This document shows positions 24,925-49,058 of a stretch of 64,000 nt of DNA, in pieces. Numbering within the stretch: position 1 is the stretch's first letter; every line of letters starts with the position of its first letter. Under the pieces are notes generated by a model that worked only from the letters and a program-made list of their open reading frames with translations, did no database searches and had not been told where the DNA came from. Made by a program: the position numbers and the translations under genes. The DNA lies in the IMG/VR virus record IMGVR_UViG_3300050122_000263, positions 496,001 through 560,000 of that record. One strand, written 5' to 3'.

Positions 24925-26355
24925 TTATGGGGCTATATAGACCAAGCTGTCGAAGCTGGTAGTTCTATCTCTCACATCCACCAGCTCTGTGACTATTTGG
25001 TGGGAACCTGGCATGTGAGTGAAAACAATAATGTCATATCCCAATTCTTTGCCTAACAGACATAGATCCCTGTCAAAACTATCTTCACTCGCGTAGAAAC
25101 CCAATAACTGCCCCATATAACGCTTGCGTTGTGGCAGACGAGCTATCTCCTCCTCTGTGAAAGATCTATTATAAAGCTGGAGTGGCCCACTGATCTTGTG
25201 TAACTTGTTATGACGATCCATCTCCTTAGTGTAAGCTGCCACTTCTAGAGGTGTCATCATCAGATCATCTGGCAGCCGTGGTAGCTGGCTCAGCTTCTTG
25301 CCGGCTGCGAAATCTCGGTAACCAAGACTGTAGGCTAGAAAGCTTTCATCAAATCCGTGAATAATGTGTTCCTCCTCGGATGGTGCTGTAACTCCTTCAA
25401 TATAGGTTTTGTGACGCCCCAACATAGCTTCCATCTGCAACATAGCGACCAGTTTAGTGCGAGCAATTAGAGCGCGCCGGAAAGCTAGGTAGGTGCTAGA
25501 CTCTGACTCCAAGTTCCCGGTTAGGGAACTAGGGGCTTCCCCAGACATATACGTCGGGGGAAGCTCCACATAATAAAAGGTGCCACAGAAACTTCCGCCA
25601 GATTGAGATGGACCATGATAGAGACCCCGACTCATACCTGCAGCATAACGGGTGACGGGAACCAGTTGCCATTCCATCCCATTCAACTCAGCCTTGAAAT
25701 AAATGTCTGTGGGAATGATCTGTGTAGAATTAATAACCGAAGCCCCTGGAGTGCGGAAAATAGACATATCGGTGACAGGGCGCTTGCTCCGCTTATATAC
25801 ACGGTCTGGCGCAAATAATAGCAAAGGCAGTGAATTAGCTGTCTCGCCAGCTTCTCGGATAAGTTCGGCTACAGTACAATAGCGCCATCTGGGCCACTGT
25901 CGCAAAGTGAGGCTCTCATCGCTATCTGGGTCACTTAGGTCAGGTAATGTGGGAGCAAATGTGTACCAGAACTTTATCTCCTCTCTTGTCAATCCATTGA
26001 GGCGATCCTCTAGATAGAGCGTATTGAGTTCGGCTATAGTGGTTACGCCTTCTCCATAGCTCGGTAAGTAATCGTTACTCTCCTCCTCGGTGGGAAGTTC
26101 TGGTAAGAAACCGGCTCTCACAAAGGCCACAGCATCGGGAATTGAGCGCACGTTAAACAATAGGCATTGTTTAGCATCGCTAAGTTGTTGAGCTAGCAGA
26201 GCTCGGATCTGCTCTGCAAAGGCTGGAATGTCTGTGATGTCTCCATAATAATGACGCCCCTCTGCATCAATGGTGCCGATGGGAATCAACGGTTTAGATG
26301 TCAGCTCCTCTTCTTCCTCCTCAAAAGAGACAGATTCATTGAAAGACTCTTGCAT
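24925..26355 (-). CDS. Paralog family A member 1 (PVTRY...GTFYY...GYD...QIVTE; putative ART-like fold)
   Basis: Clear colinear similarity to 36026-37132 and 47871-49058. Confidence 0.8.
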   Translation of the reverse strand: MQESFNESVSFEEEEEELTSKPLIPIGTIDAEGRHYYGDITDIPAFAEQIRALLAQQLSDAKQCLLFNVRSIPDAVAFVRAGFLPELPTEEESNDYLPSYGEGVTTIAELNTLYLEDRLNGLTREEIKFWYTFAPTLPDLSDPDSDESLTLRQWPRWRYCTVAELIREAGETANSLPLLLFAPDRVYKRSKRPVTDMSIFRTPGASVINSTQIIPTDIYFKAELNGMEWQLVPVTRYAAGMSRGLYHGPSQSGGSFCGTFYYVELPPTYMSGEAPSSLTGNLESESSTYLAFRRALIARTKLVAMLQMEAMLGRHKTYIEGVTAPSEEEHIIHGFDESFLAYSLGYRDFAAGKKLSQLPRLPDDLMMTPLEVAAYTKEMDRHNKLHKISGPLQLYNRSFTEEEIARLPQRKRYMGQLLGFYASEDSFDRDLCLLGKELGYDIIVFTHMPGSHQIVTELVDVRDRTTSFDSLVYIAP

Positions 26356-26422
26356 CTCGCTCCTTTCCTTGAGTTCGATAATAAATTGTCGCAGAGTTAT
26401 AAATTGTTCTTTTCATATCTAA

Positions 26423-27631
26423 ATGGAGGCTTCGATCGGAGGCATCAAATACAACTTTGCGATTCCAGGTACAGGGATTGAGATAAAACTCTTTGAAGTA
26501 TCACGATACTTCTCAGATTATGGCAATACTAATTTCAATCTATCACTACTCAATTTAGGCAATGGCTATTATTTGGCAGCTTGTAACAGCTTCCGTCGTT
26601 ATGCTGAGGGTGCTCTTCCCCGCAGTCTGATTGCTGATACTCTGAATAATCCCAACCATCCTTGGTTAGGCGGTAAAGGTTCAACTACTTGGTGGAAAAT
26701 AACAGCAAAAGGTACCGATGGTTCAATTATCATGGTTTTGGACGGTAACTTTCGAGTGCTGGGTATCCCCGTGCTTATCAGTACTGTCAATGATACCAGA
26801 TTGTTCCGCAATGCAGCAGGGGAGATAATCGCTACCACTTCCGCAGGAGTTCTTCGCCAGCAGATCGGTGAGGACAGGGAGAAATATGGGCTTCCCAAGG
26901 ATGAAGCCCGTCTTAAGTGCGGTAATGTCTGCGGCCTAATAAATGAGTATGTTATCGGCTCACCAGTAAAAGTAGGAAGAGAATGGGAGATGACGGTACA
27001 AGACAGGGGACCACTTTGTGCTAATCTCTCCGTACATGGGGAGAAGAACTGGTCGCTCTGGAGTTATAACGGCCGAGACTTTATTTCCTACTGGTTGGCA
27101 CCCAAACATACAGTCTTCATAATGGAAGGCAACATCTCACGCTGTGCTGCTAAGATGGAACAGGAGATTAATATCTTCCAGCAAGTGGAGCAGTTCTATG
27201 CGCGGAAAGTTATCTTTTCTCTATCCACTCCAGCCTTGCCTTTAGGAGATGGCACCATGCTGGCAGTTGGTCACCTGAAAATTCACCTCGATGGACTGAG
27301 GACCGATACGCCTGCTCATCGCTTTGTTACAGCGGTTGCCGATTTACCTCATCACCCCTTTGAGGTCATCTATCTTATGTATCTGTATACCTTCAATCCA
27401 GAGACTTTCAGCTTGCTACAGATCAGTAATGCTTTCTTGCCACCAGCTGCTAAATACGCTCTGGTCTTTCCGGAGGGATTAACACACTCAGATGATGGTC
27501 GTTTCTTGATCTCCTATGGAGAAGGTGATGTATTAATGAAAATCATGGCTATTAACTTAGAGACAGTCAGATCACTGCTTTATTCTGTGGAGAATGTTAA
27601 TCCGGCTGATTTCAACTTCTACAAGTTATAA
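26423..27631 (+). CDS. GH130-like five-bladed beta-propeller glycosidase
   Basis: EKNWSLW, SLSTPA...LAVGH, YLMYLYTF...ISNAF, LVFPEGL...LISYGEGD match this propeller family. Confidence 0.6.
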   Translation: MEASIGGIKYNFAIPGTGIEIKLFEVSRYFSDYGNTNFNLSLLNLGNGYYLAACNSFRRYAEGALPRSLIADTLNNPNHPWLGGKGSTTWWKITAKGTDGSIIMVLDGNFRVLGIPVLISTVNDTRLFRNAAGEIIATTSAGVLRQQIGEDREKYGLPKDEARLKCGNVCGLINEYVIGSPVKVGREWEMTVQDRGPLCANLSVHGEKNWSLWSYNGRDFISYWLAPKHTVFIMEGNISRCAAKMEQEINIFQQVEQFYARKVIFSLSTPALPLGDGTMLAVGHLKIHLDGLRTDTPAHRFVTAVADLPHHPFEVIYLMYLYTFNPETFSLLQISNAFLPPAAKYALVFPEGLTHSDDGRFLISYGEGDVLMKIMAINLETVRSLLYSVENVNPADFNFYKL

Positions 27632-27678
27632 GCCTCAACCTTCAGACTAGATGTCAAAAATCTCTCAACAGAGATTTT

Positions 27679-27966
27679 TTATACTCGGGGCAAGAAACAG
27701 CCCGCCGAGGCAAGCAGAATCGCACTGTTTGTCCATATAAAATATATGGTATCATCACCGGGAAACTTGTAAAAGACGATGTATTTGTCCCATCCTTGCT
27801 CTTTAGCGTATTTAGCGGCACTTTCAGCAGTGCTGGTGCCGTAACAACTTCCCGCACCAGAAATATTCCACATATAAATTCCCTGTGGTATCTCTTCTAG
27901 ATCTTTTGAGTCCGGAGCTGACATATCCTCTCTGTTAGGTATCCTCCCCACCGTTCTTCCTGCCAT
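27679..27966 (-). CDS. Hypothetical protein
   Basis: 95 aa ATG ORF. Confidence 0.55.
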   Translation of the reverse strand: MAGRTVGRIPNREDMSAPDSKDLEEIPQGIYMWNISGAGSCYGTSTAESAAKYAKEQGWDKYIVFYKFPGDDTIYFIWTNSAILLASAGCFLPRV

Positions 27967-27998
27967 TTTTCTGGCTATGAGATGAGATTATTTACAAT

Positions 27999-28020
27999 CA
28001 TTCCAGAAATTTCTGGAATG
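27999..28020. promoter_or_regulatory. Perfect 22-bp palindrome in a divergent intergenic region
   Basis: CATTCCAGAAATTTCTGGAATG; it sits between two 5' ends and lacks the TAAAAA flank. Confidence 0.4.
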
Positions 28021-28232
28021 ACTTGCTCGACAGGGTAGGGTTATCTGTTACCTCTCGTTTTAATGGAGTATATAACATATTCTGCTGTTTTAGCTTACCG
28101 TCTTTTAACCCTTATCTTGAAAATATTTGCTCCGAAACATTACGCTGAGGGGAAGCATCATTCTGGCCGGAGAAATTAAGTGTCTGCAACTGTAAATGAC
28201 AGGTGCAAATTCCTTTTTAGCAGAGCAAAGCG

Positions 28233-29219
28233 ATGGCGGAGGCCGACGCGAAAGGTAAAGAGGAAACCCCATCGCTAAAACGCCCTCTTGTTAAGTGGAA
28301 ACTTGGTGGCACTTTTATCCCTAAAGTGGCTGTCAAAGTTGAACCAGAAGAACCGGAGGATCCTCCTGTAGTGGTGCTTCCTACTGTCCCTGATGACACC
28401 CCGCCAGAAATACCGGCGAAACCAAATCTACCTCTCAAACGCTCGGTTAGGGAGGTCGAGCGTGTGGCTGCTCTGCGGGACAAATTCACACTGCGAGATG
28501 TTCTGGCCCAGCATCAAGTCGCTCTTATGGGCAACTGTCCTTATCGAACTGTCATTAACATGGAGCGAAAGTTGTTAGTTAGATTGTGGTATAATACCTG
28601 GCCAGAGGATCTTCAGAGTTTTTGTCATTCTTTCCTACTGCGGGAGGAGAAGTTTATACGCCTACTACCAGCAGGAAAGGGAGACTATGGAAAAGGCAGA
28701 CGGGCCATTGTTGGTTGGCTTGTAAATACAGGAAGAACGGATGTCTTGAGTGGCAATAATTATGCAATTCCGATAAATCGAATAAAGAAGAACCCTACTA
28801 TAAAGGTGGTGATTGTGGTGGATGGTGACAACCTATGGCAAGTTGTGCCTGTCATAGGTAAATTTAATACAAAACACATACATGCTATCGTGTATGCCAA
28901 CACGGAGGTTCTGACCAGCAATCCTGTGCTGTATGCGAGAGGTAGGCCCTGGCTAAACATTATCCACAATTTCAACACTCAGAATGATGCCACTGATTTG
29001 CATGTGACAATGGCCGTGACGGCCTGTAACATGTTGTTAGATGACCATCTTGTTCTGCTTGTTGTTAGTGGAGATCATTTCGCCCGAAGCACTGTAGAAT
29101 ATCAACGCGAAATCCGTGAATTTTTGTATCCCAAACAGCGGTCAGTGCACTGGGTACAAAGTGTAAAGCAGATGGAGGCTATTTTGCAAGATTTGGCTCC
29201 ACTGCCCAGTAGAAAATAA
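28233..29219 (+). CDS. NYN/PIN-like nuclease domain protein with upstream HTH-like segment
   Basis: VIVVDGDN...NDATDLHVTM...LVVSGDHFA; paralog of 46837-47781. Confidence 0.65.
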   Translation: MAEADAKGKEETPSLKRPLVKWKLGGTFIPKVAVKVEPEEPEDPPVVVLPTVPDDTPPEIPAKPNLPLKRSVREVERVAALRDKFTLRDVLAQHQVALMGNCPYRTVINMERKLLVRLWYNTWPEDLQSFCHSFLLREEKFIRLLPAGKGDYGKGRRAIVGWLVNTGRTDVLSGNNYAIPINRIKKNPTIKVVIVVDGDNLWQVVPVIGKFNTKHIHAIVYANTEVLTSNPVLYARGRPWLNIIHNFNTQNDATDLHVTMAVTACNMLLDDHLVLLVVSGDHFARSTVEYQREIREFLYPKQRSVHWVQSVKQMEAILQDLAPLPSRK

Positions 29220-32096: not shown

Positions 32097-32154
32097 CTTT
32101 GTTATAGCGATGAGAATTTTAAATTAGTCTGCTCCGTTTGAGCTCTCTTTACAG

Positions 32155-34356: not shown

Positions 34357-35865
34357 TTACTTGAAGTGATAGAGCTGAGGTGGTATAAATTTCCCTGCAG
34401 GAGAGGGTTGTACTTGTTCGAGCCTGTAGGCTGGCTTATTTCTAGAAGGAGAACGGGCTGTCATCACCATCTGTGGTATGAACCTTCTGCTTGGATCAGT
34501 GGCTGGTTGAGGTGTGGGTTGAAATGTGGGCTGAACAGGCTGAACAGGCTGAACAGGCTGAGTGACTGGTAAGACAGGGGGTTGAAGAGGACGGACTATA
34601 GGTGAAGGTATCAGCATAGGAGTGAAGGGTTGAAGAGGACGGATCATAGGTGAAGGCGTAGGCAAAGGCATTATCATAGGAGTGAAGGGCTGAAGAGGAC
34701 GGACTATAGGTGTAGGTGAAGGTATCAGTGCCGGAGTGAAGGGTTGAATTGGAGGTGTTTGAGGTGCAGGAGGTAAGATGGGATCCCCATAAGCCCCAAG
34801 TAGGGTTAACCCAGTGGGGTAAGTGGTAAACATTTGCGAGAGCTGTTTAACCACAGGGACATCAGCCACATACTGGAAAGTGTATTCCGCAGGTGGCCGG
34901 AGAAGATAGTCGAGACTTTGTTGGAAAAGTTGACCTATCAACTCATTAGGGCTAGCCCATTCACTAAGCACAGATATTAGACCATTTGCGGTGCTTTCTA
35001 GATATCCGGGAACATCCATAACAAAGCCCGGGTTACGGCGAATGGGGCGAACATCCTCATAATCAATCCAGGCCGCTCTCATTCCCAGAGTTGGCACATA
35101 GTAGCTCACACCAAGAATTTGGTAAGCAAAGAATCCATTGGAGTCAATCGGGAAGATAACTGCATTTTCCGACTTGGGATCGAGATGCTCATAATCAACC
35201 CCAAGCAATGCATCCTGCCCTTGCCAAAGTTGAAGGAACAAGGTTAGCTCCTGCTGAACGGTAGTTTGTGTAGCTTGCAGCCAAGTTCGAACATTTGATC
35301 CACCCTTCTCAGATAGAACATAAGTGTAACCAGCTATTTCATGGAAAATCTGTTCTTCAATCGCCTGGTCGGGGAGCGGTGCACCAAATTGCATCGATTG
35401 TTCTCGGATCTGTCGATAATAGTCCTTCTGACCCTGTCGCCACTGTTCGCGAGGTGGCACGAATCGCTCAGGCCGATCCAAAGGGCAATGCAACACTGCA
35501 TAAACATAAGTTAAATGTGCTGTCTTGTTAGTTTCAATTAACTTGTTGATCGTGGCGTAAAGATTGTCGAGATCACTGTAACGGCCACTTTGTTCCAAAT
35601 GAAGCTCGCGGTCAACACGCTTCACAGCATAACCATATTGACAGATTTCGTCTTCACAAGCGGCAAACACTGTTGCATAGCCTCCTTCACCTAACTTACG
35701 AACCTCCGGGTTAGCAAAGATGATTGAAGCAGGGAAATCTCGAGCTGTTGCATTACAAGTTAACCCTTGTAGACGGCTCTTAACATAATTAATCTTTTCC
35801 TCTTCTCCACGCAACCAAACCCCTGAGACTGGGGTAGTTTGCACAGTAAGTGGTCCGCCTTCCAT
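34357..35865 (-). CDS. Ser/Thr protein kinase-like protein with Pro/Gln-rich repetitive tail
   Basis: LGEGGYATVF, YAVKRV, HLDPKSEN, WIDYE. Confidence 0.85.
   Translation of the reverse strand: MEGGPLTVQTTPVSGVWLRGEEEKINYVKSRLQGLTCNATARDFPASIIFANPEVRKLGEGGYATVFAACEDEICQYGYAVKRVDRELHLEQSGRYSDLDNLYATINKLIETNKTAHLTYVYAVLHCPLDRPERFVPPREQWRQGQKDYYRQIREQSMQFGAPLPDQAIEEQIFHEIAGYTYVLSEKGGSNVRTWLQATQTTVQQELTLFLQLWQGQDALLGVDYEHLDPKSENAVIFPIDSNGFFAYQILGVSYYVPTLGMRAAWIDYEDVRPIRRNPGFVMDVPGYLESTANGLISVLSEWASPNELIGQLFQQSLDYLLRPPAEYTFQYVADVPVVKQLSQMFTTYPTGLTLLGAYGDPILPPAPQTPPIQPFTPALIPSPTPIVRPLQPFTPMIMPLPTPSPMIRPLQPFTPMLIPSPIVRPLQPPVLPVTQPVQPVQPVQPTFQPTPQPATDPSRRFIPQMVMTARSPSRNKPAYRLEQVQPSPAGKFIPPQLYHFK
34527..34748. 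repeat. Coding tandem repeats in the kinase tail
   Basis: Imperfect 48-60 bp units (GGGTTGAAGAGGACGGACTATAGG..., encoding RPLQPFTP) plus CTGAACAGG x3 (QPV). Confidence 0.85.
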
Positions 35866-36025: not shown

Positions 36026-37132
36026 ATGGAGTGTAATCCAGAACAAACAGATGTTATTGTGTCTGAACAGACCACTGAGACAGTTTTACAGGTCACAGAT
36101 ATAGAGCAGTTTAAGCAAACTCAGAAACAGCTGGACGAATTGGGGAAATCTTCAATTATTGTCGAAGTTAAGTTGAAGGCACCCTGGAGAGAGTTTATTA
36201 AGGCCGGGTTTCTTCCACTAATCGGTCACGGGGAATTCACTGAATGTAGCGGTATGGCTCTACAAGCTTGCAATGTTGGATTAACTGCAAGAATGGCTCT
36301 AGGGTATTTGCTATCTGGCTATACTGAACCGGAAATGGATTTCTACATCGGAGATCATTGGCGTGAAGTGGCTGATTTCCAACAATGGGGTCGCTGGCAG
36401 TTCTGCGCGCTAGAAAGCTGGTATGCCCAAGCTATGACCGATTGCCAATCCCTCCCAATCATTCTGTATGGAAGGGCTGGGGATCTCTACACTAAATCTC
36501 AGCGGCCTCGTACTGATATGTCTCTCTTTCTACCATTGACCCTTTCTACACCCCCCTCTTACAAGCAGGAGGAAGATTGGCAGTTAGTTCCAGTCACTCG
36601 TTACGCTTCAGGAATGAGTAGAGGCCTCTTCCATGAGGAAGACAATACTAGGCAATTTGGTACTTATTACTACAAAGAAGAGGAATCAACTATCTTCTTG
36701 CGCTATAAGCGAGCTCTGATTGCCAAGAACAAATATGAAGCAGCTAAACAACTGGGCGTAGAAGCAGAGAGGTATTTGAACGGAGAGAAAACAGCCAAAG
36801 CTTGGTATCGAGGAGAAATTCCAACACCAGCCGATCTAATGATGACTCCGATAGAGATGTATGATTGCACTCTAACACAAGACAGGGATATCCTAGGAAA
36901 CTGTAACGAGCTCTGCAAGCAAATTTCCCAAGATAAGCGATATGCTGGTCTCTTCTTGGGTCTCTATGCTGCGGAGGATGATCTGGATGGAATTTTGTAT
37001 GATCGGGCTAAGAAGGCCGGTTACGATATAGTCATATTCTCAGCAATTGGCTCTCATCAAGTTGTTGAGGAAGTATTGGATGTACGACCTCGAGCAGAAT
37101 CCTTCTCTCATCTAGTCAGATGCTCAGAATAA
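36026..37132 (+). CDS. Paralog family A member 2 (putative ART-like)
   Basis: VPVTRYASGMSRGL...FGTYYYKEEES...GYDIVIFSAIGSHQVVEEVLDVR. Confidence 0.8.
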   Translation: MECNPEQTDVIVSEQTTETVLQVTDIEQFKQTQKQLDELGKSSIIVEVKLKAPWREFIKAGFLPLIGHGEFTECSGMALQACNVGLTARMALGYLLSGYTEPEMDFYIGDHWREVADFQQWGRWQFCALESWYAQAMTDCQSLPIILYGRAGDLYTKSQRPRTDMSLFLPLTLSTPPSYKQEEDWQLVPVTRYASGMSRGLFHEEDNTRQFGTYYYKEEESTIFLRYKRALIAKNKYEAAKQLGVEAERYLNGEKTAKAWYRGEIPTPADLMMTPIEMYDCTLTQDRDILGNCNELCKQISQDKRYAGLFLGLYAAEDDLDGILYDRAKKAGYDIVIFSAIGSHQVVEEVLDVRPRAESFSHLVRCSE

Positions 37133-37191
37133 ACGCCTAAGTGAGTAAAAAACTATTATCTCTAGGCAGAGATAATCGGTCCTTGTAAAGA

Positions 37192-37896
37192 ATGGAAGAT
37201 GCTGCTCGCAACCTTTCACAAGCCCCTCTATCTCCAGAGTGTCAGAAACAGCTGTGGGCCAGTGTCACTAATTTCTTACAATTACAAGCAGCCGCTGCCC
37301 TCAATATTCAGGGCAATGCCATATCTGGTCCTATCTATGGTAGTCGTTTGAATGAGGAATCTGAAATTATTCTAACTCAGCTAACCAAGCTTAATCTCTA
37401 TGGCTGCTTCACAACAGATTCTCAGCCATATCAGCGTTTCACTCTCTTTGAGGATCAGAACCAAGATGTCATTCAGCGTCCTTTTCTCATGTTCTGGACT
37501 AGAACTGCCTTAGCAGCCTCCTTTCTAGGTCGATTCCTTCAACTTCATCCCCAGGCTTTGATTAGTGTGACTCATAACGGGCAGATGGTGCCTGAGACAT
37601 ATGGAGTCAACAATTTCACTTTTGCTCAACATACTAACCCAACTACCAATGAGACAAATTATCTTGTTGCAGCTCACATGGTACGCCCGGTTAACGATCC
37701 TAATGCAGCTTGGCAAGAGAACTACAACACCACCTTCACACTCCATCAAAACATCTATGATGTTGAGAGGGCTAGCGTACAGAGTGTTGAGCCCGTCTCA
37801 CTCTTCATTGTGCTCAGCGCTGAGCAGTCCAACAGACTATTTGATGACTGCCTCAGGTCTATTATCTATGCAATTGGAGTGGAAGAAGGTGTATAA
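37192..37896 (+). CDS. Stand-alone MTHFR C-terminal (SAM-binding regulatory)/DUF6919-like domain, copy 1
   Basis: RLNEESEIILTQLTKLNLYGCFTTDSQPY...VIQRPFLMFW. Confidence 0.65.
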   Translation: MEDAARNLSQAPLSPECQKQLWASVTNFLQLQAAAALNIQGNAISGPIYGSRLNEESEIILTQLTKLNLYGCFTTDSQPYQRFTLFEDQNQDVIQRPFLMFWTRTALAASFLGRFLQLHPQALISVTHNGQMVPETYGVNNFTFAQHTNPTTNETNYLVAAHMVRPVNDPNAAWQENYNTTFTLHQNIYDVERASVQSVEPVSLFIVLSAEQSNRLFDDCLRSIIYAIGVEEGV

Positions 37897-37984
37897 CCTG
37901 AATTTAGGACTTATCTCCCAAGATAAATCTGGAGGAAATTATAAACTGTTTCACTTAAAAAGGTCATTTAATTGGTCAAACAAG

Positions 37985-39007
37985 ATGGCGAACAAGGAAC
38001 TGGCTTCTCTTATCACTGTGTTGAGCGAAGTGGCTGAAACTTATTCTAAGCAAGTGATTGAAACTGTGAAGGTTAATATTGATTGCATTAACAAGATCCG
38101 ATCGGCCATCTCAGTACTTGAGAAGCTTACCATTCCTGCCTCGGAAACCGGAACTCCGAAGCTAGAGCAGGCTGTGAAAGATGTTGAGCAGCCTCAGCCT
38201 CAACAGACCGAAGTTTGTGAAATTAAAGCAGAAGTTAAGGAATCACTGACAATCACCCCATCTACTACCCCAAGTCCTGTCATTGCTGTTGAAACTGTCG
38301 TGCCTGAAACTATCCCCGCTCATCCACCCTCTCCCGTCTGCAGTAGATATCACCAGTCTGATTTCGAGCGCTTCCTGCGCCAGCACGATCTACCTTCTAA
38401 ATTCATGGAGCAGTTCCTCAAAGCTGTCTGTGAGCATAAGGGCAAGCTGTACGGCAGCTACCTCATGCGGGCTATGATGCTGGTTACCATGCAACAGGCC
38501 CACAAGCCTAATTGGCTGGTTGATCCCCACACTGTTCGCTTCTGGTTCACCAGTGAAGAGGATAAAGCGGCAGCTTTCAAGGTTCTGTCGTGCGGACAAG
38601 ATTACCGTCTCCTTAAGAACATAGGAGACGCTGACAAGTATAACTTACACTTCATCAGTCGCAAGGGAGGTTTTAAGCTGCTGCCACTCACTGTCTATCT
38701 GGTGGTCTCTCCTGTCTTCCCGGAAAAGACCTTCCTACAAGCCATGGTGGTTTATGATTTCAAAGGTAGCATGGGATCCTACCCTCCCTTGGCTCCAGTT
38801 CTCAGAGATCTCATATTCCGCTTCAATGCGGGAGCTGGCTACATGAAACATGCTGAATTCATGCGCGCTCGTTGCAACTACAACGAGCGAGAAATCAAGG
38901 CTGCCCGGGATAGCGAACAGGAACAACTCACTCACGGCTTCGTCGTAGATCGCACCTTTATTGTGCGAGATGATGGCACTCTCACTACATTTGAGCCTCC
39001 CAAATAA
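37985..39007 (+). CDS. Degenerate NTase-fold paralog of 29947-31344
   Basis: Start at AAGATG 37985; the ORF-track extension overlaps the upstream gene. Coiled coil, then KGKLYGSYLMR...HTVRFWFTS without the catalytic Asp pair. Confidence 0.6.
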   Translation: MANKELASLITVLSEVAETYSKQVIETVKVNIDCINKIRSAISVLEKLTIPASETGTPKLEQAVKDVEQPQPQQTEVCEIKAEVKESLTITPSTTPSPVIAVETVVPETIPAHPPSPVCSRYHQSDFERFLRQHDLPSKFMEQFLKAVCEHKGKLYGSYLMRAMMLVTMQQAHKPNWLVDPHTVRFWFTSEEDKAAAFKVLSCGQDYRLLKNIGDADKYNLHFISRKGGFKLLPLTVYLVVSPVFPEKTFLQAMVVYDFKGSMGSYPPLAPVLRDLIFRFNAGAGYMKHAEFMRARCNYNEREIKAARDSEQEQLTHGFVVDRTFIVRDDGTLTTFEPPK

Positions 39008-39031
39008 TGACCGTTAACTAACACAAGTAAA

Positions 39032-39056
39032 TTAAAAACTCATAACTTATGAGTTT
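39032..39056 (+). terminator. 3' hairpin
   Basis: TTAA then AAACTCATAA-c-TTATGAGTTT. Confidence 0.65.
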
Positions 39057-39154
39057 CGACATAGATCGAGGTAAATAATGCTGAACTTGGCAGAGATAAT
39101 TGATAATCTGATTTGACAGCATTTCAGTGTTTTGCATGAAAGCTAACAGGAAAC

Positions 39155-40213
39155 ATGCAAGAACCGGTTATTGTAACAAGCGATCATGGACGAGGCCCAG
39201 CTAATGAGGGTCTCCAGCGTTTAGTGAGAGAAGAGGAGTTGCACGAGCACTTCAAGACTTTGTATGGAGAGATGGAGGCACAGCAGATAAGAGAGATGTG
39301 CTACAGTTTTGAGCCTGAAGCCAGTAAAACCCCACCTTACTACTGGGTCTTCCTAGAGCGTGGTTCAACAGAGTTGAACTCAGCCCTTACTCACTCCACG
39401 GGAGTGAGTTTAGAGCGTCGCTCGGAAGACATTCCAAGCATAGCCCCTGCTCACTCCACAGAGATGAGCTCGGATCATAGTTCAACAGAGTTAAACTCGA
39501 CTCCTCACCCTGAGGCGAATAAGGATCGCAGCACAATTTTCCATGAGGTTTTTCCCAAGCACTATCAGATCAGCTGGAAGGATGAGCCCCATGAATTGGA
39601 GACTGTCACCTGTTACCATACAGTGGCAACTATCACCAACAACTCTCTTCCAGCCACTCATGCTGCAATGACTGAGGCAGAGTACAGTGCTATTCTGCTC
39701 GGAGTTAAGAAGCACTTCATCAATGATGGCGTGGAAGAGATGTCTCAATCTCTCTACAGCAGGAGCAGTGGGCGCCATGTCACAGTTGATCTTCCCCATC
39801 GAGAAGCCATGTTCCGCGACTTCTTCGGCGACAACTACGAAATAATCTTCACACTGGAGAATAACATGATCGATGGACATCCGTTCCAGTATAACACCCT
39901 CCTGATTAGGCGCAAAGAAGGAGCAGATGCAGCTCTACCCATACGCCAAGAGTTCGCTGTTAAGACCGAGTTCCTGGGTTGGCTGCACAAGAAGCGAGCT
40001 GAAATGACGAGACTAGGCCGCTGCACCTTGACTATGTCTGGGGATCAAGCAGATGTCTTCTTAGTCATTAGCTTGGCTAGCCGAGACAAACTGGTGCATA
40101 CCGCTTTTGGTAAGCGCTGCCGCATAGAATGGGCTGAGGAGCAGAGAGTGCTGTATGGCCAGACCTACCATTACACTACCCTCTATGTGGCTATGCCCAT
40201 CACCGGCCGCTAA
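39155..40213 (+). CDS. Hypothetical protein with internal duplicated modules and a palindromic in-frame segment
   Basis: 352 aa; repeated F..xF.++Y.I.W...Y.T modules; STELNS occurs twice. Confidence 0.75.
   Translation: MQEPVIVTSDHGRGPANEGLQRLVREEELHEHFKTLYGEMEAQQIREMCYSFEPEASKTPPYYWVFLERGSTELNSALTHSTGVSLERRSEDIPSIAPAHSTEMSSDHSSTELNSTPHPEANKDRSTIFHEVFPKHYQISWKDEPHELETVTCYHTVATITNNSLPATHAAMTEAEYSAILLGVKKHFINDGVEEMSQSLYSRSSGRHVTVDLPHREAMFRDFFGDNYEIIFTLENNMIDGHPFQYNTLLIRRKEGADAALPIRQEFAVKTEFLGWLHKKRAEMTRLGRCTLTMSGDQADVFLVISLASRDKLVHTAFGKRCRIEWAEEQRVLYGQTYHYTTLYVAMPITGR
39363..39498. repeat. Cluster of DNA hairpins inside a CDS
   Basis: GTTCAAC-aga-GTTGAAC (39363-79), ACTCACTCC-acg-GGAGTGAGT (39389-409), and degenerate second copies at about 39449 and 39480. 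Confidence 0.75.
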
Positions 40214-40956: not shown

Positions 40957-41496
40957 ATGAGTGGTACAGGCGATGAAGTTACTAATTCTAAATCAGAGGT
41001 AGTTCAAAGCAGTGACCCTGTAGCGGAGGCGGAAGTAGTGGTCAAACCAGCAGAGCCAACTATAACCCCAGCCCCAACCTCAATTCCAGCAGCATCTCAA
41101 CAAGAAACAATACAGCCTCAACAGCCGGCAGCTATAACCTCACAGTCCTCTCAAAAGGTAACTCAGCCCTCTAAACCTCAATCCAAACAAGCGACAGCGG
41201 CCAAGGCGCCTCAGAAACACTCAGCCAAAGTTGGCAAGCAGAAACAGAAAGAGCCCATCGATCCTTATACAGCAAATACCAATGATGTGATCAATCTAAC
41301 GCCTGAAGAAGTAGCTGATCTGTTACTGCGATTCAATGTGGAGAAAGCTCATGTACTTCCCTTCATTAAGGAGCGGATTAATGGGCTGGCTTTCCTGCTG
41401 CTGGAGAGTTATGAGCTCAATCACCTTAACTTGCCTCTAGGGCCGAGGAAAGTGATCTTCTACTTGATTCAGCAGATTCGCCAGCGCAATAGTTGA
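40957..41496 (+). CDS. SAM (sterile alpha motif) domain protein
   Basis: LTPEEVADLLLRFNV...FIKERINGLAFLLLESYELNHLNLPLGPRKVIFYLI; disordered P/Q/K-rich N-terminus. ATG at 40957. Confidence 0.85.
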   Translation: MSGTGDEVTNSKSEVVQSSDPVAEAEVVVKPAEPTITPAPTSIPAASQQETIQPQQPAAITSQSSQKVTQPSKPQSKQATAAKAPQKHSAKVGKQKQKEPIDPYTANTNDVINLTPEEVADLLLRFNVEKAHVLPFIKERINGLAFLLLESYELNHLNLPLGPRKVIFYLIQQIRQRNS

Positions 41497-41757
41497 TGGC
41501 TGAGATTAATAAAAACAATATAGGACTATGTTGTTTCACTTGATAAGCTCGACTTAACACTGAGGTATTGTGGCATGATCATTAAAATGCTCTGTGTTAA
41601 CTGCCCTATTCTTCAGGCATAGGTTGTGAATTCTGATTTACAATGCTCTAACGCCTGTGTGAGCGCGCTCAAAGGCTCAGATTAAATAATCACAGTTGTA
41701 GATTGATTTATTGGGTTACTCATTAGTGGTAATAAACACAACTTCACACAGTTAGAT

Positions 41758-42573
41758 ATGCAAGGAACAGATGAGCAAGTAGCACACAACACCATAAGTG
41801 GTGATGAGGATTTATCTCAAGATCAAACACCCGAAGGCTCTGAAGAAGAGGAAGTAGTAGATGTGTTTTCTCTAGCCTCAGCTCCAAAGGGATCGGACGA
41901 TAATGCAACGGCTAAAATCGTGTCCCACGCATCTATCTCCTATCAAGCAGGGGAAGATTTGTGGCAGACAATAGCCAACTTCGAGCAATTGCAAGCTGTT
42001 TTTGCTCTCAACATCCAGGGAAATGTATTGGAGAGCCCATCCCATATTGGTCGCCTAGATGAGGAAACTGAGGTTATTATACCTCAGCTGACTAAGCTTA
42101 ATCTATATGGCTGTGTTACTGTCAACTCTCAACCCTATGGTAAGTTTGTTTCACCACTGACCAACAGTTGGGCTATCCAACGGCCTTATCTCTGTTGTTG
42201 GTTGCGCTCTGAGGAGGCCTTCGCTTTCATCGCCACTTTACGAGAGATAGATGAAAGATATGCCGTCACATGTGTTGACGATGAAGTCATGACTCCGGAG
42301 ACCTTCGGCCTGAAGCACTTCATCCTGGACAACGGTGCTATAGCAGGGTATAAGACACTGACTATCACAGGGGAAGGCGAGGTTTGGGTTGAGGATTACC
42401 ATCATTGCCTTCCTATGACGGAGAACAATTATGTAGATGAGCAAATACGACTTAACATAGTTGGTGAGAAGATGACCTTGATCACAATTGTCAGTGATCA
42501 ACAGAACAATGATATCTTCGATGACTGTGTTAAGGCCATGGCCAAGGTGGTCTATCACAGGGAGTGGCCCTAA
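41758..42573 (+). CDS. Stand-alone MTHFR C-terminal/DUF6919-like domain, copy 2
   Basis: RLDEETEVIIPQLTKLNLYGCVTVNSQPY...AIQRPYLCCW; paralog of 37192-37896. Confidence 0.65.
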   Translation: MQGTDEQVAHNTISGDEDLSQDQTPEGSEEEEVVDVFSLASAPKGSDDNATAKIVSHASISYQAGEDLWQTIANFEQLQAVFALNIQGNVLESPSHIGRLDEETEVIIPQLTKLNLYGCVTVNSQPYGKFVSPLTNSWAIQRPYLCCWLRSEEAFAFIATLREIDERYAVTCVDDEVMTPETFGLKHFILDNGAIAGYKTLTITGEGEVWVEDYHHCLPMTENNYVDEQIRLNIVGEKMTLITIVSDQQNNDIFDDCVKAMAKVVYHREWP

Positions 42574-42720: not shown

Positions 42721-45426
42721 ATGCAAGCTGCCACAGCTCCTGAGCATGTCACACTCAATTTCGCCGGTCAGCAGTTGAAACTGCCTCTCCCCATTGCTCA
42801 ACAAGCAGGCACTCTAAAGCAGCTACTCGAATTCAACCGCAAGTACGGAGCTCAAAATTACAACTTCACCCTTGCTTTAGAGGAGCTACCGGAGGATATC
42901 AGAAATAATCCGACCGTGCAAGAGCAGCTCTTAATTCGCCTACGCCAGATTTTCTTTGATGAAGCGTTCTTTGTGCCAGAAGACCCGGCCACATTACTGA
43001 ATCTGTTAGCCTTGATGCAACGACTGGAGCTCACCAAGTCTCCATATCTGGAGAACATAGCTACCAGATACTTCTCGTTGTTACCATTTGGCGAGTTGCC
43101 ACCCCAAGAGACGCTGCTCTGGATATTCACACATCAACCCATTCCAGTTGCTCGGTTCTTGAAGCAACTCTCTAACAGACTGCATCAGGAGGATGGTTTC
43201 AACACAGCCATCATACGCTATTACCAAGAGCTGATTCGAGCTGATCAGCAGATCGCTTATGCGCTACAACCTCATAGCTATCCTTTTGTCCATCCAGACA
43301 GGGTAGACCGGATCTCACCAAATCTCTTCCTACTGAATCCATTAGATAATACCCGTCCCTTGATATCAGATTATATGCAAGCTGGACTGGCTGTAGCCAT
43401 CCATCGTAAGAGCTTCCTGGTGCCACCACCTCAATGGATTGAGAATGTGGAGATCAAGTTTCCAACTCAGGCTGTTTTTATCGGAAGGTTGGTACAGCTC
43501 TTCCCCGGTTTGATCAAATTTGTGGAGGATATAGCGAGAGAAGTCACGGAGATGTTTCCACCTGTTGATAACCGACCAGTAGCGGGCTGTCTACTAGCAG
43601 GGCCTTTTCTACCAATTTGTCTGGACGACTGGTTATTTCAGCGTTTACGTCACAAAGCCTCGATCGAGATTCTGATCTATGGTAGTAGCCCTGCAGTGCG
43701 AGAACGAGTCTTTGACTTAATACTAGGTTGGTTCCGCGAATACTTCGATGATCAGGAAGGAGATGTGACCACCAGATATTACGAGGATAGTTGGGTTTTC
43801 GTCAATCCCACTCAGCGTGTCAGGTTACGACCTCTCTTATTCAACACAGCTATGGCGGCCCTGTCACAACAACGCCTCTCACACTCACAAATTGGTTACG
43901 ACATCCATTATGGACTGCTTGCTACTCCCCTCTTCTCATTATATTGGCGCCGACGTGAATCTATTATCGCCTGGTATGGAGTCAGAGGTGAGGAGTTGAT
44001 AGGAGCAGCTTATTTCGGCTTCGCCATTAAGCTGATCGCTCCATATGCTCATATACTGAGGGAATCAGCTATCCATATTTTCGAAGATGGTCGCCCCACT
44101 GCCGAGGTCTACTATGAAAGCACTCCAAATTTCACCCTAATTAAAGGAACCCCTAATCTTGTCTTAGAAAATGCAGGGAAGAGACCAGTTCTGGCAGTCG
44201 ATTATGCTGGGCCAAGAGCTTCCCCTCGTTTGGAAGCATTTCCTCAGGACTTTTTGCCGGGGGACAGGGGTAGTTATGGCCTTATAACCATATTTGGAGG
44301 AGTGAGTTCTATTGTAGAAACCACGCCTTGGGAGACCGAAGTCTTGTTCAGAAGAGATTTCCGTGATAATATGCATGTTAACTTCGAAGTTAACGCTTTG
44401 TTTGCCAATCCAAGTATCAGATCAGGTCTCAACCCCGGGGCTGATACTACAATTGAAGGTGTTATGTTCACACCGCGGAGCTTCTATCATGCTCACCGCG
44501 ATGTTGGTACTGATCTACTTTGGGGAAGCCCTATTGAACTAGCAGCCGGGCCTGGCTCCTTTGGTAGCTATTTCTGGTTACGTCAATGTTCTTTCAAACG
44601 CTCCCCTGTCTACCGCTTCCCTCGTGGCATCATTCCACAAGAGGGACATTACCGGACCTTCGATGCCCTACGAGGTTATGTCGTTGAGAATTCTCGTCCA
44701 CCCATAGCGGACACATTTCAACTGATAGACGAAAATGTGGTGAAATATCCTATCCCACTCAGAGATGCTGATCAAGGATACATAGTGTTTACAGAGCTGC
44801 CGCAACCGGCTGATCCCAGACACCTTGAGTTACTGAAGCCTGGTAAAGCAGAGTGGCCAATCACTGTCACTGCTGTGCTACAACTCAGGACTTTTGGCGG
44901 GCAACAACGACCAGTTACTCCAGAACTCTATCGTGAATCTCTACAGCTTAATGAGGAGCAGATTGCAGCACTGCCTCTAGTGACTGCTGAGCAACTGCCC
45001 GCCCTACTTTACCAGGCTGATCCTCAGTTCAGAGCCCAAGCAGAAGCATATCGTGAGAATGCTGCAACGATCCAAGAGCTGAAGGAAGATGAAGAGATCG
45101 ACGATGAAAACGAAGAGGAGCCAGGTTATATACCTAGACTTGCAGAGGGTGAGATGGAGAACTTTAAACAAGTCTACCGAAATCGAATCGCTGAACTGAC
45201 TCTGGACTTTGAACGTGAAGCTCAACAGCTCCCCCTCTATGTTCGGGTAACAATAGATGTAATGGTTGATAGATGGTTCTTCATTGATGGGGCCAACTGG
45301 CTGATGCCTTTTGATGAGTTGTTTAACAACCAGTTCAATTGCTCTATCAGGATAGACTCAGCTGATGAGAATGGTGAAGAGAGACGTTATCCGTACATTA
45401 TGCGAGGTTACAAAGTGTATCCCTAG
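42721..45426 (+). CDS. Large protein with BTB/Skp1-like N-terminus and degenerate NTase-like segment
   Basis: VTLNFAGQQLKLPLPIAQQAGTLKQLL resembles a BTB/Skp1 start; GCLLAGPF...SIEILIYG resembles the NTase head without the Asp residues. Confidence 0.5.
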   Translation: MQAATAPEHVTLNFAGQQLKLPLPIAQQAGTLKQLLEFNRKYGAQNYNFTLALEELPEDIRNNPTVQEQLLIRLRQIFFDEAFFVPEDPATLLNLLALMQRLELTKSPYLENIATRYFSLLPFGELPPQETLLWIFTHQPIPVARFLKQLSNRLHQEDGFNTAIIRYYQELIRADQQIAYALQPHSYPFVHPDRVDRISPNLFLLNPLDNTRPLISDYMQAGLAVAIHRKSFLVPPPQWIENVEIKFPTQAVFIGRLVQLFPGLIKFVEDIAREVTEMFPPVDNRPVAGCLLAGPFLPICLDDWLFQRLRHKASIEILIYGSSPAVRERVFDLILGWFREYFDDQEGDVTTRYYEDSWVFVNPTQRVRLRPLLFNTAMAALSQQRLSHSQIGYDIHYGLLATPLFSLYWRRRESIIAWYGVRGEELIGAAYFGFAIKLIAPYAHILRESAIHIFEDGRPTAEVYYESTPNFTLIKGTPNLVLENAGKRPVLAVDYAGPRASPRLEAFPQDFLPGDRGSYGLITIFGGVSSIVETTPWETEVLFRRDFRDNMHVNFEVNALFANPSIRSGLNPGADTTIEGVMFTPRSFYHAHRDVGTDLLWGSPIELAAGPGSFGSYFWLRQCSFKRSPVYRFPRGIIPQEGHYRTFDALRGYVVENSRPPIADTFQLIDENVVKYPIPLRDADQGYIVFTELPQPADPRHLELLKPGKAEWPITVTAVLQLRTFGGQQRPVTPELYRESLQLNEEQIAALPLVTAEQLPALLYQADPQFRAQAEAYRENAATIQELKEDEEIDDENEEEPGYIPRLAEGEMENFKQVYRNRIAELTLDFEREAQQLPLYVRVTIDVMVDRWFFIDGANWLMPFDELFNNQFNCSIRIDSADENGEERRYPYIMRGYKVYP

Positions 45427-45554
45427 ACCTTGACAGCGGAGATAAAAACTTGTCATGACTGACAAGTTGAGAGTTTAAATCACTGAAGACAGAGAAATTC
45501 TGTGGTGAGATGAGATGTAAAGTGTCTGAAAATTAAGATTCTTTTCTCAGGAAA

Positions 45555-46754
45555 ATGCAAGGTCAGACACCTATACTTCCCGGTGCATTTGGCAATCGAG
45601 CCATAGAAGGAGTGCCATATGTTGAGAAGATGTCAACAACTGGCTTTGGTGTTGAACCTCCAACTCCATTAGAGGAGGTATGGCTGCATCGACAACAGGT
45701 TGCTACAGCTCAACAGGAGTTAGAACAGGCACTGCAGCGTGCTCAGCGTGCTGGAGCCACTCCCATTCAACTGACTCAAAATCAACCTTACTTTGCAAGG
45801 ATGTCTGCAACCACCTTTGGAGTTGAACCGCCAACTGCATTAGAGGCTCTTCAGATAAAGAGAGATCGACTTGCGCGAGTACAACAGTACTTGGTACAGG
45901 CGCAACAACGTGCAGCACAATATCTGGCAACACAACCTCAGCCCTTCCAGCCCCAACGTGCCGTTCAACCATTCCAACCCACTCAACAAGTCACACGGCC
46001 CTTCCGTCCCGCTCAGATCGCTCCACCACAACCATTTCAGCCAACTCAGCAGCCATTTGCCTTGACTCAGAAACAGATTTTCCGTGCACCCCGCTCACCA
46101 CGTCAACCCACCCAAGGACCATTCAAGCCCATTCCTCTGCCTACTCAACCTTTTCAGCCCATTCCTCTGCCTACTCAACCTTTTCAGCCCATTCCTCTGC
46201 CTACTCAACCTTTTCAGCCCATTCCTCTGCCTACTCAACCTATTAGGCCTCTTAGCCCAAGGGCTGTGCTAACTGGATCTCCTCCACGCTCACCGCCAAG
46301 ATCTCCAATCTTCCAGCTTCAACTTCAGCAGCCAACACAACAGATTCAGCGATTCACTCAGCAGCCCCGGGCCCTTCAACCCGTTGTTCAAGCTCAACAA
46401 TTCACTCAAGCTCAACAACTTCCCCCTAGGCGTGTAATTTTGGAGGAGATCTCCTGGACTGTGGGTGATCGTCCTGAACAAGCCAGATTGGCTGTGGGAG
46501 CTCCCACCATTATTCTGACTCTGAGTAGAGATGTCTTTGGTGTTGCAGATTATTCCGTCCGTATTGACGAGCCCGTGCCTGGCAACGGCATTCCAGTCAG
46601 TGCCATTTTTGAAGGCATTAACCGCATTCCTGCCTTGCAGAACCCTGTTGACCGTGGCGATCGTGTCTTTTTCGAAGGAATTGAACAATTTTTCCCCCAG
46701 GGACCTCAGGTTATCCCGGGAGTGGAATATTACGAGGTCCAACTTGGCAACTAG
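45555..46754 (+). CDS. Pro/Gln-rich repeat protein with C-terminal family D (DUF6699-like) domain
   Basis: 57-aa N-terminal duplication (PY..+MS.T.FGVEPPT.LE), QPFQP repeats, C-terminal VRIDEP..GIPVSAIF...GDRVFFEGI...YEVQLG. Confidence 0.75.
   Translation: MQGQTPILPGAFGNRAIEGVPYVEKMSTTGFGVEPPTPLEEVWLHRQQVATAQQELEQALQRAQRAGATPIQLTQNQPYFARMSATTFGVEPPTALEALQIKRDRLARVQQYLVQAQQRAAQYLATQPQPFQPQRAVQPFQPTQQVTRPFRPAQIAPPQPFQPTQQPFALTQKQIFRAPRSPRQPTQGPFKPIPLPTQPFQPIPLPTQPFQPIPLPTQPFQPIPLPTQPIRPLSPRAVLTGSPPRSPPRSPIFQLQLQQPTQQIQRFTQQPRALQPVVQAQQFTQAQQLPPRRVILEEISWTVGDRPEQARLAVGAPTIILTLSRDVFGVADYSVRIDEPVPGNGIPVSAIFEGINRIPALQNPVDRGDRVFFEGIEQFFPQGPQVIPGVEYYEVQLGN
46126..46241 (+). repeat. Perfect 30-bp coding tandem repeat, about 3.9 copies
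   Basis: Unit AGCCCATTCCTCTGCCTACTCAACCTTTTC, encoding (QPIPLPTQPF)n. Confidence 0.95.
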
Positions 46755-46792
46755 GATTCTGACCTCCATCTATAGAGTCTTACAGAAACAAC

Positions 46793-46820
46793 TAAAAACT
46801 CATTATCAATGAGTTTTTAA
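46793..46820. terminator. Bidirectional 3' hairpin
   Basis: T-AAAAACTCATT-atc-AATGAGTTTTT-AA between convergent genes. Confidence 0.7.
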
Positions 46821-46836
46821 CATCTATCCTCTATGG

Positions 46837-47781
46837 TCAATAACTTAACCATCTCCCCACAGCTGCCTCAACACTAGGCACATGATTACCAGCTAGCCAT
46901 CTCTCCACAGCTGTAGTCTTAACAGCCCAGCGCTGGCCAAAGGCTTGTGGTGTATCTTTCCACAAGAAGAGCCAAACATCTCTCCATAAATAAGGGCGAT
47001 CAAGATAGAGAGCACAGATGATATGAGCAGGCACTATAGCCCGCACTGCCACTCGTGTTAAGGGTTGCATCTCAGCTACAGAAATCTTGGCAAAATGGTC
47101 ATAGGAAACTAGTAGCAATGACTTGAGGTTGGGTAAACTCATTGTTATATACATAGCTTGAATAGTAATACTTAGGTCGGCGGCATCTCTTTCATTGGAA
47201 CCAGAGTGTACAATAGTCAACCAACCACGGGGTGGATTCAATAGTTCATTCAGAGCCTGGGAGCGCTTTCCTTTGGCCAGAGTCACTACAACATGTATAT
47301 CAGACAGTAACATACTGTTTGTGGGTGCCTTATATGCATCTATCTCTGCAGCAACACGAGCACAAGAATCACCATCTATCAGGACAACAGTGCTCAAACC
47401 ATTTTGTATAGCAGCTAACTTGAAACAAACTTGTGCTGTGCTAAGAGACGGCAGTTCACAAGATACAGCCACATCGCTGGTATCCTCCATCTTACAGTCC
47501 AGTTCCTCCTCTGCTTTGGAGCGATTGGCTTCAATTACCACTTCAGACATCTTGGTCTTAATCTGGGGAGGTGGATGATGAGATAGAAATCGCCTAATCG
47601 CATTAGCAGCAGAGGGCATACTCCTTCTTCCCTGTAGCCAGCGTGAGAAATTTCCCTGATTCAAGAGCCAAGTCTTACTAAAGGCGGATTGTGTACCCAT
47701 CCACTCCGTCTTCCAAGCTACAATTAACTGGTTGTCTGTCAGGTTCAGGAAGTGAGTTGGAATCTTAAGTTCATCTTGCAT
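46837..47781 (-). CDS. HTH - NYN/PIN-like - HTH protein
   Basis: QSAFSKTWLLNQGNFSRWLQG; VLIDGDS...ERDAADLSI...LLVSYDHFA; PQAFGQRWAVKTTAVERWLAG. Confidence 0.65.
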   Translation of the reverse strand: MQDELKIPTHFLNLTDNQLIVAWKTEWMGTQSAFSKTWLLNQGNFSRWLQGRRSMPSAANAIRRFLSHHPPPQIKTKMSEVVIEANRSKAEEELDCKMEDTSDVAVSCELPSLSTAQVCFKLAAIQNGLSTVVLIDGDSCARVAAEIDAYKAPTNSMLLSDIHVVVTLAKGKRSQALNELLNPPRGWLTIVHSGSNERDAADLSITIQAMYITMSLPNLKSLLLVSYDHFAKISVAEMQPLTRVAVRAIVPAHIICALYLDRPYLWRDVWLFLWKDTPQAFGQRWAVKTTAVERWLAGNHVPSVEAAVGRWLSY

Positions 47782-47840
47782 CTCTGTTCACCTTCACTGT
47801 TGACTGCAAGTAAAACAGAATAACACTATATCAAATCTAC

Positions 47841-47869
47841 CTTGCTTATCTCAATAAGCAAGTTTTTAA
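47841..47869 (-). terminator. 3' hairpin
   Basis: CTTGCTTAT-ctca-ATAAGCAAG followed by TTTTTAAC (TTAAAAA on the sense strand). Confidence 0.65.
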
Positions 47870-47870
47870 C

Positions 47871-49058
47871 TTAAGCGATGTACAGTAAGCACCGGAAGCT
47901 CTCGTCTCGTGGCCTCGCATCCAAAACCTCTGTCACTATTTGGTGAGACCCCACCATATGAGTCAGAATGAGAATATGCAGCCCAGCCTCCTCGGCCATA
48001 ACCGCGAGGCTTTGGTCGAATTCATCTTCCTGCGCAAATAAGCCCAGCAGCATGCCGGCATAGCGAGCTGTGGTTGCAATACGTGGCACTAATTGCCGCT
48101 TGCTCTCAGGGAAGTTAACTCCTTTGTATGTCTGGATCTGCTCTGGTGTCATAATCAAATCCTCAGGCATTCCAACCATGTGTTTCTCATGTGCCATCTC
48201 ATCATCCAGCTTGTCCATGGCTGTCTCCTTGTTGCGGAAGGTTCTGGCTCGCTGATAGAGTAGGAAGGTGGTCGATTCTGGCTCGTAATAATAGAATGTC
48301 CCTTTGAAGTCGTCTACATTCTCATTAAAATAAAGACCTCGGTTCAGAGCGCTGGCATAGCGAGTGACAGGGATACAGAAGCATGTTTCAGCTTGTGGTC
48401 CGTTCAAAGTCACAATGTATTCGTATTGATTGATTTGAGTGAGTTGCTCTCGCTTGGCTGTTAGTGAGTTGATAGTTCGGAACATAGCCATATCGTTTCT
48501 AGGTCGCCGACTGCCTGTGTAAACAAGCTCAGGGGCATACATTAACAGAGGTAGTGAGTCAGCCGTTCTTAGAGCATGTTGCCGCCAATATTCAACAGTG
48601 GCGAAGATCCAAACCTTACTACAAAGGGCCAACTTCTTAGGATCCCCATACCAGAAAATGTTCTCCTCCTCCGTCATGCCATGCAGAATAAGCCCTTCAA
48701 TCACATCACTGTTCTTTTCCGGTAGGAAACCAGCCCTGGCCATCTCCAGATTATTATCTACATAGAAGTTGGTTGTGTGACAGCGTATCATCACCAGTTT
48801 GTGTTGCTGCATAAGAGCCCCAACCTCCGTGAAGAGCCTTTGCACATTGAGCTGTGCAAAGAGAACAGGGTAACAAAAGGTATCGTCCTGCCGGATAAGG
48901 TGACTGTCGACATCATAAGCAACAGTCAAATCAATGGTACCGATGCTGGGCGATGTGGCATCCACCACGATTTCGCTCATTGTGTGAGGTTCTGTGGTCA
49001 CAATGTTGAGAAATAAGGCAGCTGCAGTTCGAGCTCGTTTGTTAGACATATTTTTCAT
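47871..49058 (-). CDS. Paralog family A member 3 (putative ART-like)
   Basis: IPVTRYASALNRGLY...FKGTFYYYEPES...THMVGSHQIVTEVLDAR. Confidence 0.8.
   Translation of the reverse strand: MKNMSNKRARTAAALFLNIVTTEPHTMSEIVVDATSPSIGTIDLTVAYDVDSHLIRQDDTFCYPVLFAQLNVQRLFTEVGALMQQHKLVMIRCHTTNFYVDNNLEMARAGFLPEKNSDVIEGLILHGMTEEENIFWYGDPKKLALCSKVWIFATVEYWRQHALRTADSLPLLMYAPELVYTGSRRPRNDMAMFRTINSLTAKREQLTQINQYEYIVTLNGPQAETCFCIPVTRYASALNRGLYFNENVDDFKGTFYYYEPESTTFLLYQRARTFRNKETAMDKLDDEMAHEKHMVGMPEDLIMTPEQIQTYKGVNFPESKRQLVPRIATTARYAGMLLGLFAQEDEFDQSLAVMAEEAGLHILILTHMVGSHQIVTEVLDARPRDESFRCLLYIA

Follow-up and report, generated by a model that had tools for sequence, protein, structure and literature searches.

Five diverged paralogs of a giant virus, three of them encoded in the 64,000-nucleotide (nt) stretch analysed here (the window; bases 496001-560000 of the 582-kb IMG/VR virus record IMGVR_UViG_3300050122_000263), share a C-terminal region of ~230 amino acids (aa) that, judging from structure models, probably adopts a very divergent ADP-ribosyltransferase (ART)-type fold, with a rough probability of 0.65. 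The proteins closest to it in shape are most likely those of the 'divergent ART' group (AcrIF11, the RES toxins MbcT and NatT, ParT and ART-PolyVal) and of the diphtheria-toxin/PARP group. That the paralogs act as divergent ART-fold enzymes consuming nicotinamide adenine dinucleotide (NAD+), by the full mechanism set out below, is a more tentative proposal in which we infer the chemistry, and it is held at slightly less than even odds.

The three paralogs in the window are P0001 (24925..26355, minus strand, 476 aa), P0002 (36026..37132, plus strand, 368 aa, the copy used for modelling) and P0003 (47871..49058, minus strand, 395 aa). A three-way alignment has 81 columns without variation and puts identity to the first sequence at 38-39%, and all three carry the motifs AGFLP, SLP...LY, S.RP..DM, PVTRYA, GT(F/Y)YY, RY.G..LG, ED..D and GSHQ(I/V)V.E. 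An earlier note on this DNA had described three dispersed paralogs with common motifs, and coordinates, strands, alignment and motifs all agree with that description; the number, however, rises to five for the genome as a whole, as a search of the virus's own genome (coordinates hereafter G000) revealed another two full-length copies beyond the limits of the window, at G000 41108-42310 and 45640-46836, both on the minus strand. In this six-frame search the 368-aa copy matched the other copies with E-values of 3e-37 to 2e-44, so that the resemblance reflects paralogy and not chance. All five copies retain the 24 columns that are invariant in a 27-sequence alignment, and therefore none looks decayed.

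Pairwise identity among the five copies is ~31-54%, and in a FastTree phylogeny of 148 C-terminal domains, in which supports are weak, they sit in different subclades together with relatives from other contigs, the only nearest-neighbour pair among them being P0001 and the 45.6-kb copy. On the identity values and the scatter over different, weakly supported subclades, a recent tandem expansion was rejected. The diversification of the family therefore appears to predate this genome by far, and each genome, as far as sequences can tell, keeps several of its subfamilies.

An AlphaFold2 model of the 368-aa copy, built from the 27-sequence alignment, was confident (predicted local distance difference test, pLDDT, 79; predicted template-modelling score, pTM, 0.80) and comprised two domains, an N-terminal alpha/beta domain (aa ~18-139) and the C-terminal domain (aa 140-368). 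Modelled alone with 147 sequences, the C-terminal domain reached a pLDDT of 89 and a pTM of 0.86. Its order in the model is a strand (PVTRY), a short helix, three strands (GTYYY; E-x-x-S) and a helical insert of ~95 aa, followed by a strand hairpin (GYDIVIF / VVEEVLD), a helix and a short strand; the insert is predicted to separate the N-terminal and C-terminal halves of the sheet. R192 is placed at the end of the first strand of this domain, G212-T-[FY]-Y-Y216 forms the next strand and S221 lies on the strand after it, while E349 lies on the penultimate strand, with Q345 at position -4 from it as opposed to -2 in Q/E-x-E.

The nearest known structures of these models are ART proteins. The whole-protein model independently matched NatT, AcrIF11 and MbcT over residues 182-368, and the nearest structures of the C-terminal domain also include ParT, Xre-RES, VPA0770, diphtheria toxin and four homologues, and further cholix, exotoxin A, PE-like toxin and the TASOR pseudo-PARP; no DarT structure is found among these neighbours. 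In a shape search of the ESM Atlas, six of the ten rows carried the ART-PolyVal, RES or AcrIF11 Pfam families (TM-score normalised by query 0.31-0.43), and a Foldseek search of BFVD with the whole model returned many phage ART-PolyVal proteins, with a best E-value of 1.3e-3. A look-up of the whole protein in the ESM Atlas gave no usable match, the Atlas's own model being poor (pTM 0.21). Because ART chains make up a small part of the libraries, such agreement on ARTs would be very unlikely for a model resembling nothing in particular.

Conservation across the family was computed over 147 C-terminal domains with a mean column identity of 19%, in the numbering of P0002, and M165, R192, Y193, G212, Y216, S221, L225, K236, G342, E349 and L363 proved invariant, while S158, R160, P161, E218, N235, Y306, Y314, E317, D318, D321, Q322, C325, Q345, D352 and R354 were conserved in at least 90% of members. 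The invariance of the polar residues R192, Y193, S221, K236 and E349 in 147 diverse members argues for an enzyme. Arg, Gln and Glu had all been put forward as invariant; this holds for R192 and E349, but the Gln of the HQ pair is only at least 90% conserved, with Q345 replaced by H or R in a few members.

In the gene of the 368-aa copy, a stretch at 36077..36442 (plus strand) precedes the C-terminal domain (36443..37129, plus strand, aa 140-368), in which the S158-x-R160-P161 segment starts at nt 36497. Strand 1 (PVTRY) carries R192 and Y193 at nt 36599-36604, strand 2 is G212-T-Y-Y-Y216, and E218 and S221 (the latter at nt 36686-36688) follow. K236 and the helical insert (aa ~236-330), which bears E317, D318 and D321, lead to the strand hairpin (335-341 / 346-352) with Q345 and E349 (nt 37070-37072), then D352 and R354. 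P0001 has two extra insertions compared with the other copies, and its C-terminal ART-like domain (aa 173-476, about nt 24928-25839, minus strand) has R236 (nt 25648-25650) as candidate Arg and E457 (nt 24985-24987) as candidate Glu. The corresponding domain of P0003 (aa 166-395, about nt 47874-48563, minus strand) has the candidates R233 (nt 48360-48362) and E377 (nt 47928-47930).

Two sets of aligned ranges relate these residues to known ARTs. MbcT (chain 19..172) aligned to residues 45..229 of the C-terminal domain model, and range arithmetic, with no gaps in the first strand, places its R27 on R192 (model residue 53); counted from the other end of the range, the region-3 residue G152 falls at about model residue 209, next to E349 (model residue 210). 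Diphtheria toxin (14..163/165) aligned to model residues 45..227/229, which places H21 at ~52 and E148 at ~212. On this basis R192 and E349 would provisionally lie at most about two residues away from ART regions 1 and 3. The residue roles used for the MbcT and diphtheria toxin regions are those reported in PMC6436930, in which MbcT R27, with Y28 next to it, is essential for NAD+ phosphorolysis, Y58 belongs to region 2 and region 3 is a Gly. The resulting constellation of Arg, aromatic strand plus Ser, and Glu provisionally mixes features of the R-S-E and H-Y-E groups.

AcrIF11 (PDB 6KYF), a phage/plasmid anti-CRISPR ADP-ribosyltransferase grouped with ParT among the 'divergent ARTs' (PMC8120803), consists of one 132-aa domain and is listed as H-H-D (D115), whereas the paralog family has Arg and Glu, and no sequence similarity between the two was detected. 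ART-PolyVal (PF18760), which comprises the ARTs of phage polyvalent and MuF-fusion proteins, gave the highest Atlas TM-score by query (0.43 over 152 residues), recurred in BFVD and has in common with the paralog family the aromatic G-x-[FY]-Y-[FY] strand that follows strand 1, as in the Brevibacillus phage SecTim467 protein, but its strand 1 carries His-Gly-Ser where the paralog family has Arg-Tyr. The H-Y-E ARTs of the diphtheria-toxin/PARP group likewise have a His in strand 1 in place of the Arg.

In the proposed mechanism, NAD+ would be held in the cleft between the two sheet halves, where its nicotinamide-ribose-phosphate part would be bound by R192-Y193 at the strand-1 end and by the aromatic G-T-F/Y-Y-Y strand, and the invariant E349 on the penultimate strand would activate the ribose-nicotinamide bond. 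ADP-ribose might then pass to a protein or nucleic acid of the host or the virus; alternatively, NAD+ might simply be cleaved. The target would be chosen by the family-specific N-terminal alpha/beta domain, helped in some members by additional modules. Such modules are seen at the N-terminus of some longer members, with ankyrin repeats in two, a MYND zinc finger in one, a HIT zinc finger in one and a SET module in one continuous 818-aa gene of the family; all are eukaryote-type protein-interaction or chromatin modules and speak for the proposed activity. A mono-ADP-ribosyltransferase appears more likely than a bulk NADase because region 3 has an invariant Glu, the family divides into many subfamilies and some members are fused to targeting modules.

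A number of results weigh against an ART fold or its use of NAD+. Foldseek searches of the PDB with the whole model and with the C-terminal domain gave no match at E<=0.001, and the Pfam models of ART-PolyVal (PF18760), RES (PF08808) and DarT (PF14487) found no match in the whole virus genome at E<=10; that of PARP (PF00644), at E<=0.01, matched only a separate WGR-PARP gene and not the paralogs. Aligned with hhalign, the family profile reached probabilities of 1% with a purpose-built ART-PolyVal alignment and 0.4% with the PARP domain of the virus itself, and profile searches of the PDB found no ART and nothing relevant. Pfam scans returned only a chance SecM match for the three window proteins and no recurrent family for the 147 C-terminal domains at E<=1. 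Even in a control, a genuine ART-PolyVal profile touched PARP12/PARP10 only at E-values of 0.025-2.5; silence between ART families at the sequence level is thus common, though the paralog family is still more remote. The residue equivalences given above derive from arithmetic on aligned ranges and not from residue-level superposition, and the same arithmetic does not put R31 of ParT on R192, so that they remain provisional. The invariant or near-invariant S158, R160, K236, E317, D318 and D321 are without equivalent in known ARTs, the record yielded no macrodomain, and the sequencing-run search with the record's DNA retrieved only peat DNA runs, with no holder on record as RNA. An IMG/VR scan with an ART-PolyVal protein recovered only that protein itself, and the shared domains are covered by no Pfam family.

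The proposal of the earlier note, an uncharacterised viral ART family, is thus partly supported, by models whose nearest structures are ARTs, a resemblance that is weak and has no sequence-level support. Membership of RES, ART-PolyVal, PARP or DarT fails by sequence, and the paralogs are tentatively placed in a new family of the ART superfamily with a new architecture. The virus already has one genuine NAD+-dependent ART by domain content, a canonical PARP gene of 666 aa at G000 ~565795-567795 (plus strand), 6-8 kb beyond the right end of the window, with WGR, PARP regulatory (PARP_reg) and PARP catalytic (E-value 4e-39) domains, which is unrelated in sequence to the paralog family. The presence of this gene and the absence of a macrodomain say little either way.

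The residues with no ART counterpart would find a place in an alpha/beta enzyme that is new and has no kinship with ARTs, such as a transferase or hydrolase that depends on a metal or a nucleotide, with a chemistry built on S158/R160, N235/K236, the acidic E317-D318-x-x-D321-Q322 loop and D352/R354. The ART resemblance would then be a convergence of small mixed sheets, an explanation that is unlikely but carries appreciable weight; the sequence-level silence described above is what it would predict, and the concentration of ARTs among the nearest structures is what it has to attribute to convergence. An ART-derived fold that makes no use of NAD+, serving as a pseudo-enzyme or binding module that scaffolds host factors, has models in the TASOR pseudo-PARP, itself among the structural neighbours, and in the PARP-like domains of plant RCD1/SRO. 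It is quite improbable, as Arg, Tyr, Ser, Lys and Glu are invariant over 147 members at ~19% mean column identity, which is how a catalytic site, rather than a scaffold, is conserved.

Depletion of host NAD+ by a RES/MbcT-type NAD+ phosphorylase or NADase, with no target modified, agrees with the presence of NatT, MbcT, Xre-RES and VPA0770 among the best structural matches and with the Arg-Tyr pair R192-Y193, which mirrors R27-Y28 at the strand-1 end of MbcT (PMC6436930). The RES toxins in question, MbcT of M. tuberculosis (PDB 6FKG), NatT of P. aeruginosa (8QNL) and Xre-RES of P. putida (9R35), nevertheless belong to bacterial toxin-antitoxin pairs, whereas the paralogs occur in a eukaryotic giant virus, have no Xre-type antitoxin gene beside them and add the ~95-aa helical insert and an N-terminal domain. 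The RES Pfam model is unmatched, region 3 of MbcT is a Gly where the paralog family has an invariant Glu, as in transferases, and five diverged paralogs with relatives fused to targeting modules better suit substrate-specific transferases. An enzyme of this type is therefore rather improbable, and a divergent ART fold, with mono-ADP-ribosylation as its more likely activity, is the preferred explanation.

The family extends well beyond this virus. A word-index search retrieved 24 relatives, all metagenomic, with no functional name (at most 'hypothetical protein') and no Pfam domain, and an exhaustive profile search found 819 cluster representatives (clusters at 50% identity) at E<=1e-3, 390 of them at E<=1e-30. 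No functional name occurs among the listed relatives, the best 150 of the 819, nor in cluster look-ups of ten, one of them encoded on a contig of 953 kb and another on one of 405 kb; two IMG/VR matches are giant-virus metagenome-assembled genomes. Where the genomic setting is readable, the family is found in uncultured giant viruses or giant-virus-like contigs (Nucleocytoviricota).

The record itself codes for a nucleocytoplasmic large DNA virus (NCLDV) major capsid protein and a family-B DNA polymerase (PolB), genes that mark its source as a giant virus. The relatives of its PolB retrieved by word search are all metagenomic proteins and at most 53% identical, and a search of sequencing runs found the record's DNA in peat metagenomes of six to seven studies. 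A second record, IMGVR_UViG_3300050123_000192 (391 kb), in which the C-terminal domain of the 368-aa gene is 100% identical and a second paralog lies ~9 kb away, probably represents this virus as assembled from a different sample.

In an all-against-all comparison of the record's open reading frames (ORFs), the ART-like paralogs form its fourth-largest paralog family, and all five copies lie at most 61 kb from the record ends. Multi-copy families near genome ends are typical of host-interaction families in large DNA viruses, which counts in favour of the proposed function. Near-perfect palindromes of 18-22 nt follow three of the five paralog genes, ~10-50 nt past the stop codon, namely those with stops at window 37132 (plus strand), window 47871 (minus strand) and G000 45640 (minus strand). 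They resemble the hairpin 3'-end signals of mimivirus transcripts. Inspected by eye, the regions upstream of the five copies showed no promoter motif in common.

The genes adjoining the ART-like paralogs are unrelated ORFans and DUF6919 proteins. DUF6919 paralogs are found at window 37192-37896 (plus strand), directly downstream of the 368-aa gene, and at 41758-42573 (plus strand), with a third at G000 474958-475647. An 11-copy family of ORFans of ~900 aa, with no Pfam domain, is concentrated at both record ends and interleaved with the ART-like paralogs; one copy is in the window (42721-45426, plus strand) and ten more are elsewhere in the record, for example at G000 36378-39308, 42915-45545, 49530-52208 and 568854-577133.

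The wider neighbourhood comprises many ORFans, a weak, sub-threshold VWA-domain match, F-box proteins and an ERG4/ERG24 sterol reductase, a sterol-biosynthesis enzyme of 507 aa (55463-56986, minus strand) with a full-length domain (E-value 2.4e-100). The F-box proteins (2972-4291 and 57956-59407, both minus strand; E-values 2e-7 and 2e-8) fall in three- and two-copy paralog groups of the record. Repeats include a perfect 30-bp tandem repeat of 3.9 copies (46126-46241), which lies within the ORF at 45555-46754 and codes for a 10-aa repeat, and a looser 60-bp repeat (34599-34748) within the ORF at 34357-35865. Between positions 4001 and 8000 the guanine-plus-cytosine content drops to 0.38, compared with ~0.45-0.48 elsewhere, and in this segment lie four small ORFs of one family (G000 500388-502649) and ~2 kb free of long ORFs.

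In the conflicts between phages and bacteria and between pathogens and hosts, ADP-ribosylation is one of the main weapons. The literature searched held no account of giant viruses of protists with an effector ART family of their own, and giant viruses go unmentioned in a 2021 review of ADP-ribosylation in bacteria and viruses. It is rather unlikely, though far from negligible in probability, that the paralogs represent the first large lineage-specific ART effector family in giant viruses, with at least 819 clusters, several diverged copies per genome near the ends, an Arg/aromatic/Glu site unlike the classical H-Y-E and R-S-E sites and an N-terminal targeting domain peculiar to the family, with different subfamilies acting on different proteins or nucleic acids of the protist host. 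Should the fold or the use of NAD+ not hold, giant viruses of soil and peat would still have in this family one of their larger conserved groups of ORFans, with a confident model to which no solved structure comes close. If both the fold and the use of NAD+ hold true, several multi-copy ORFans per genome would gain a function, the ART superfamily would gain a new active-site variant, and the family would offer a handle on the host pathways that giant viruses disable.

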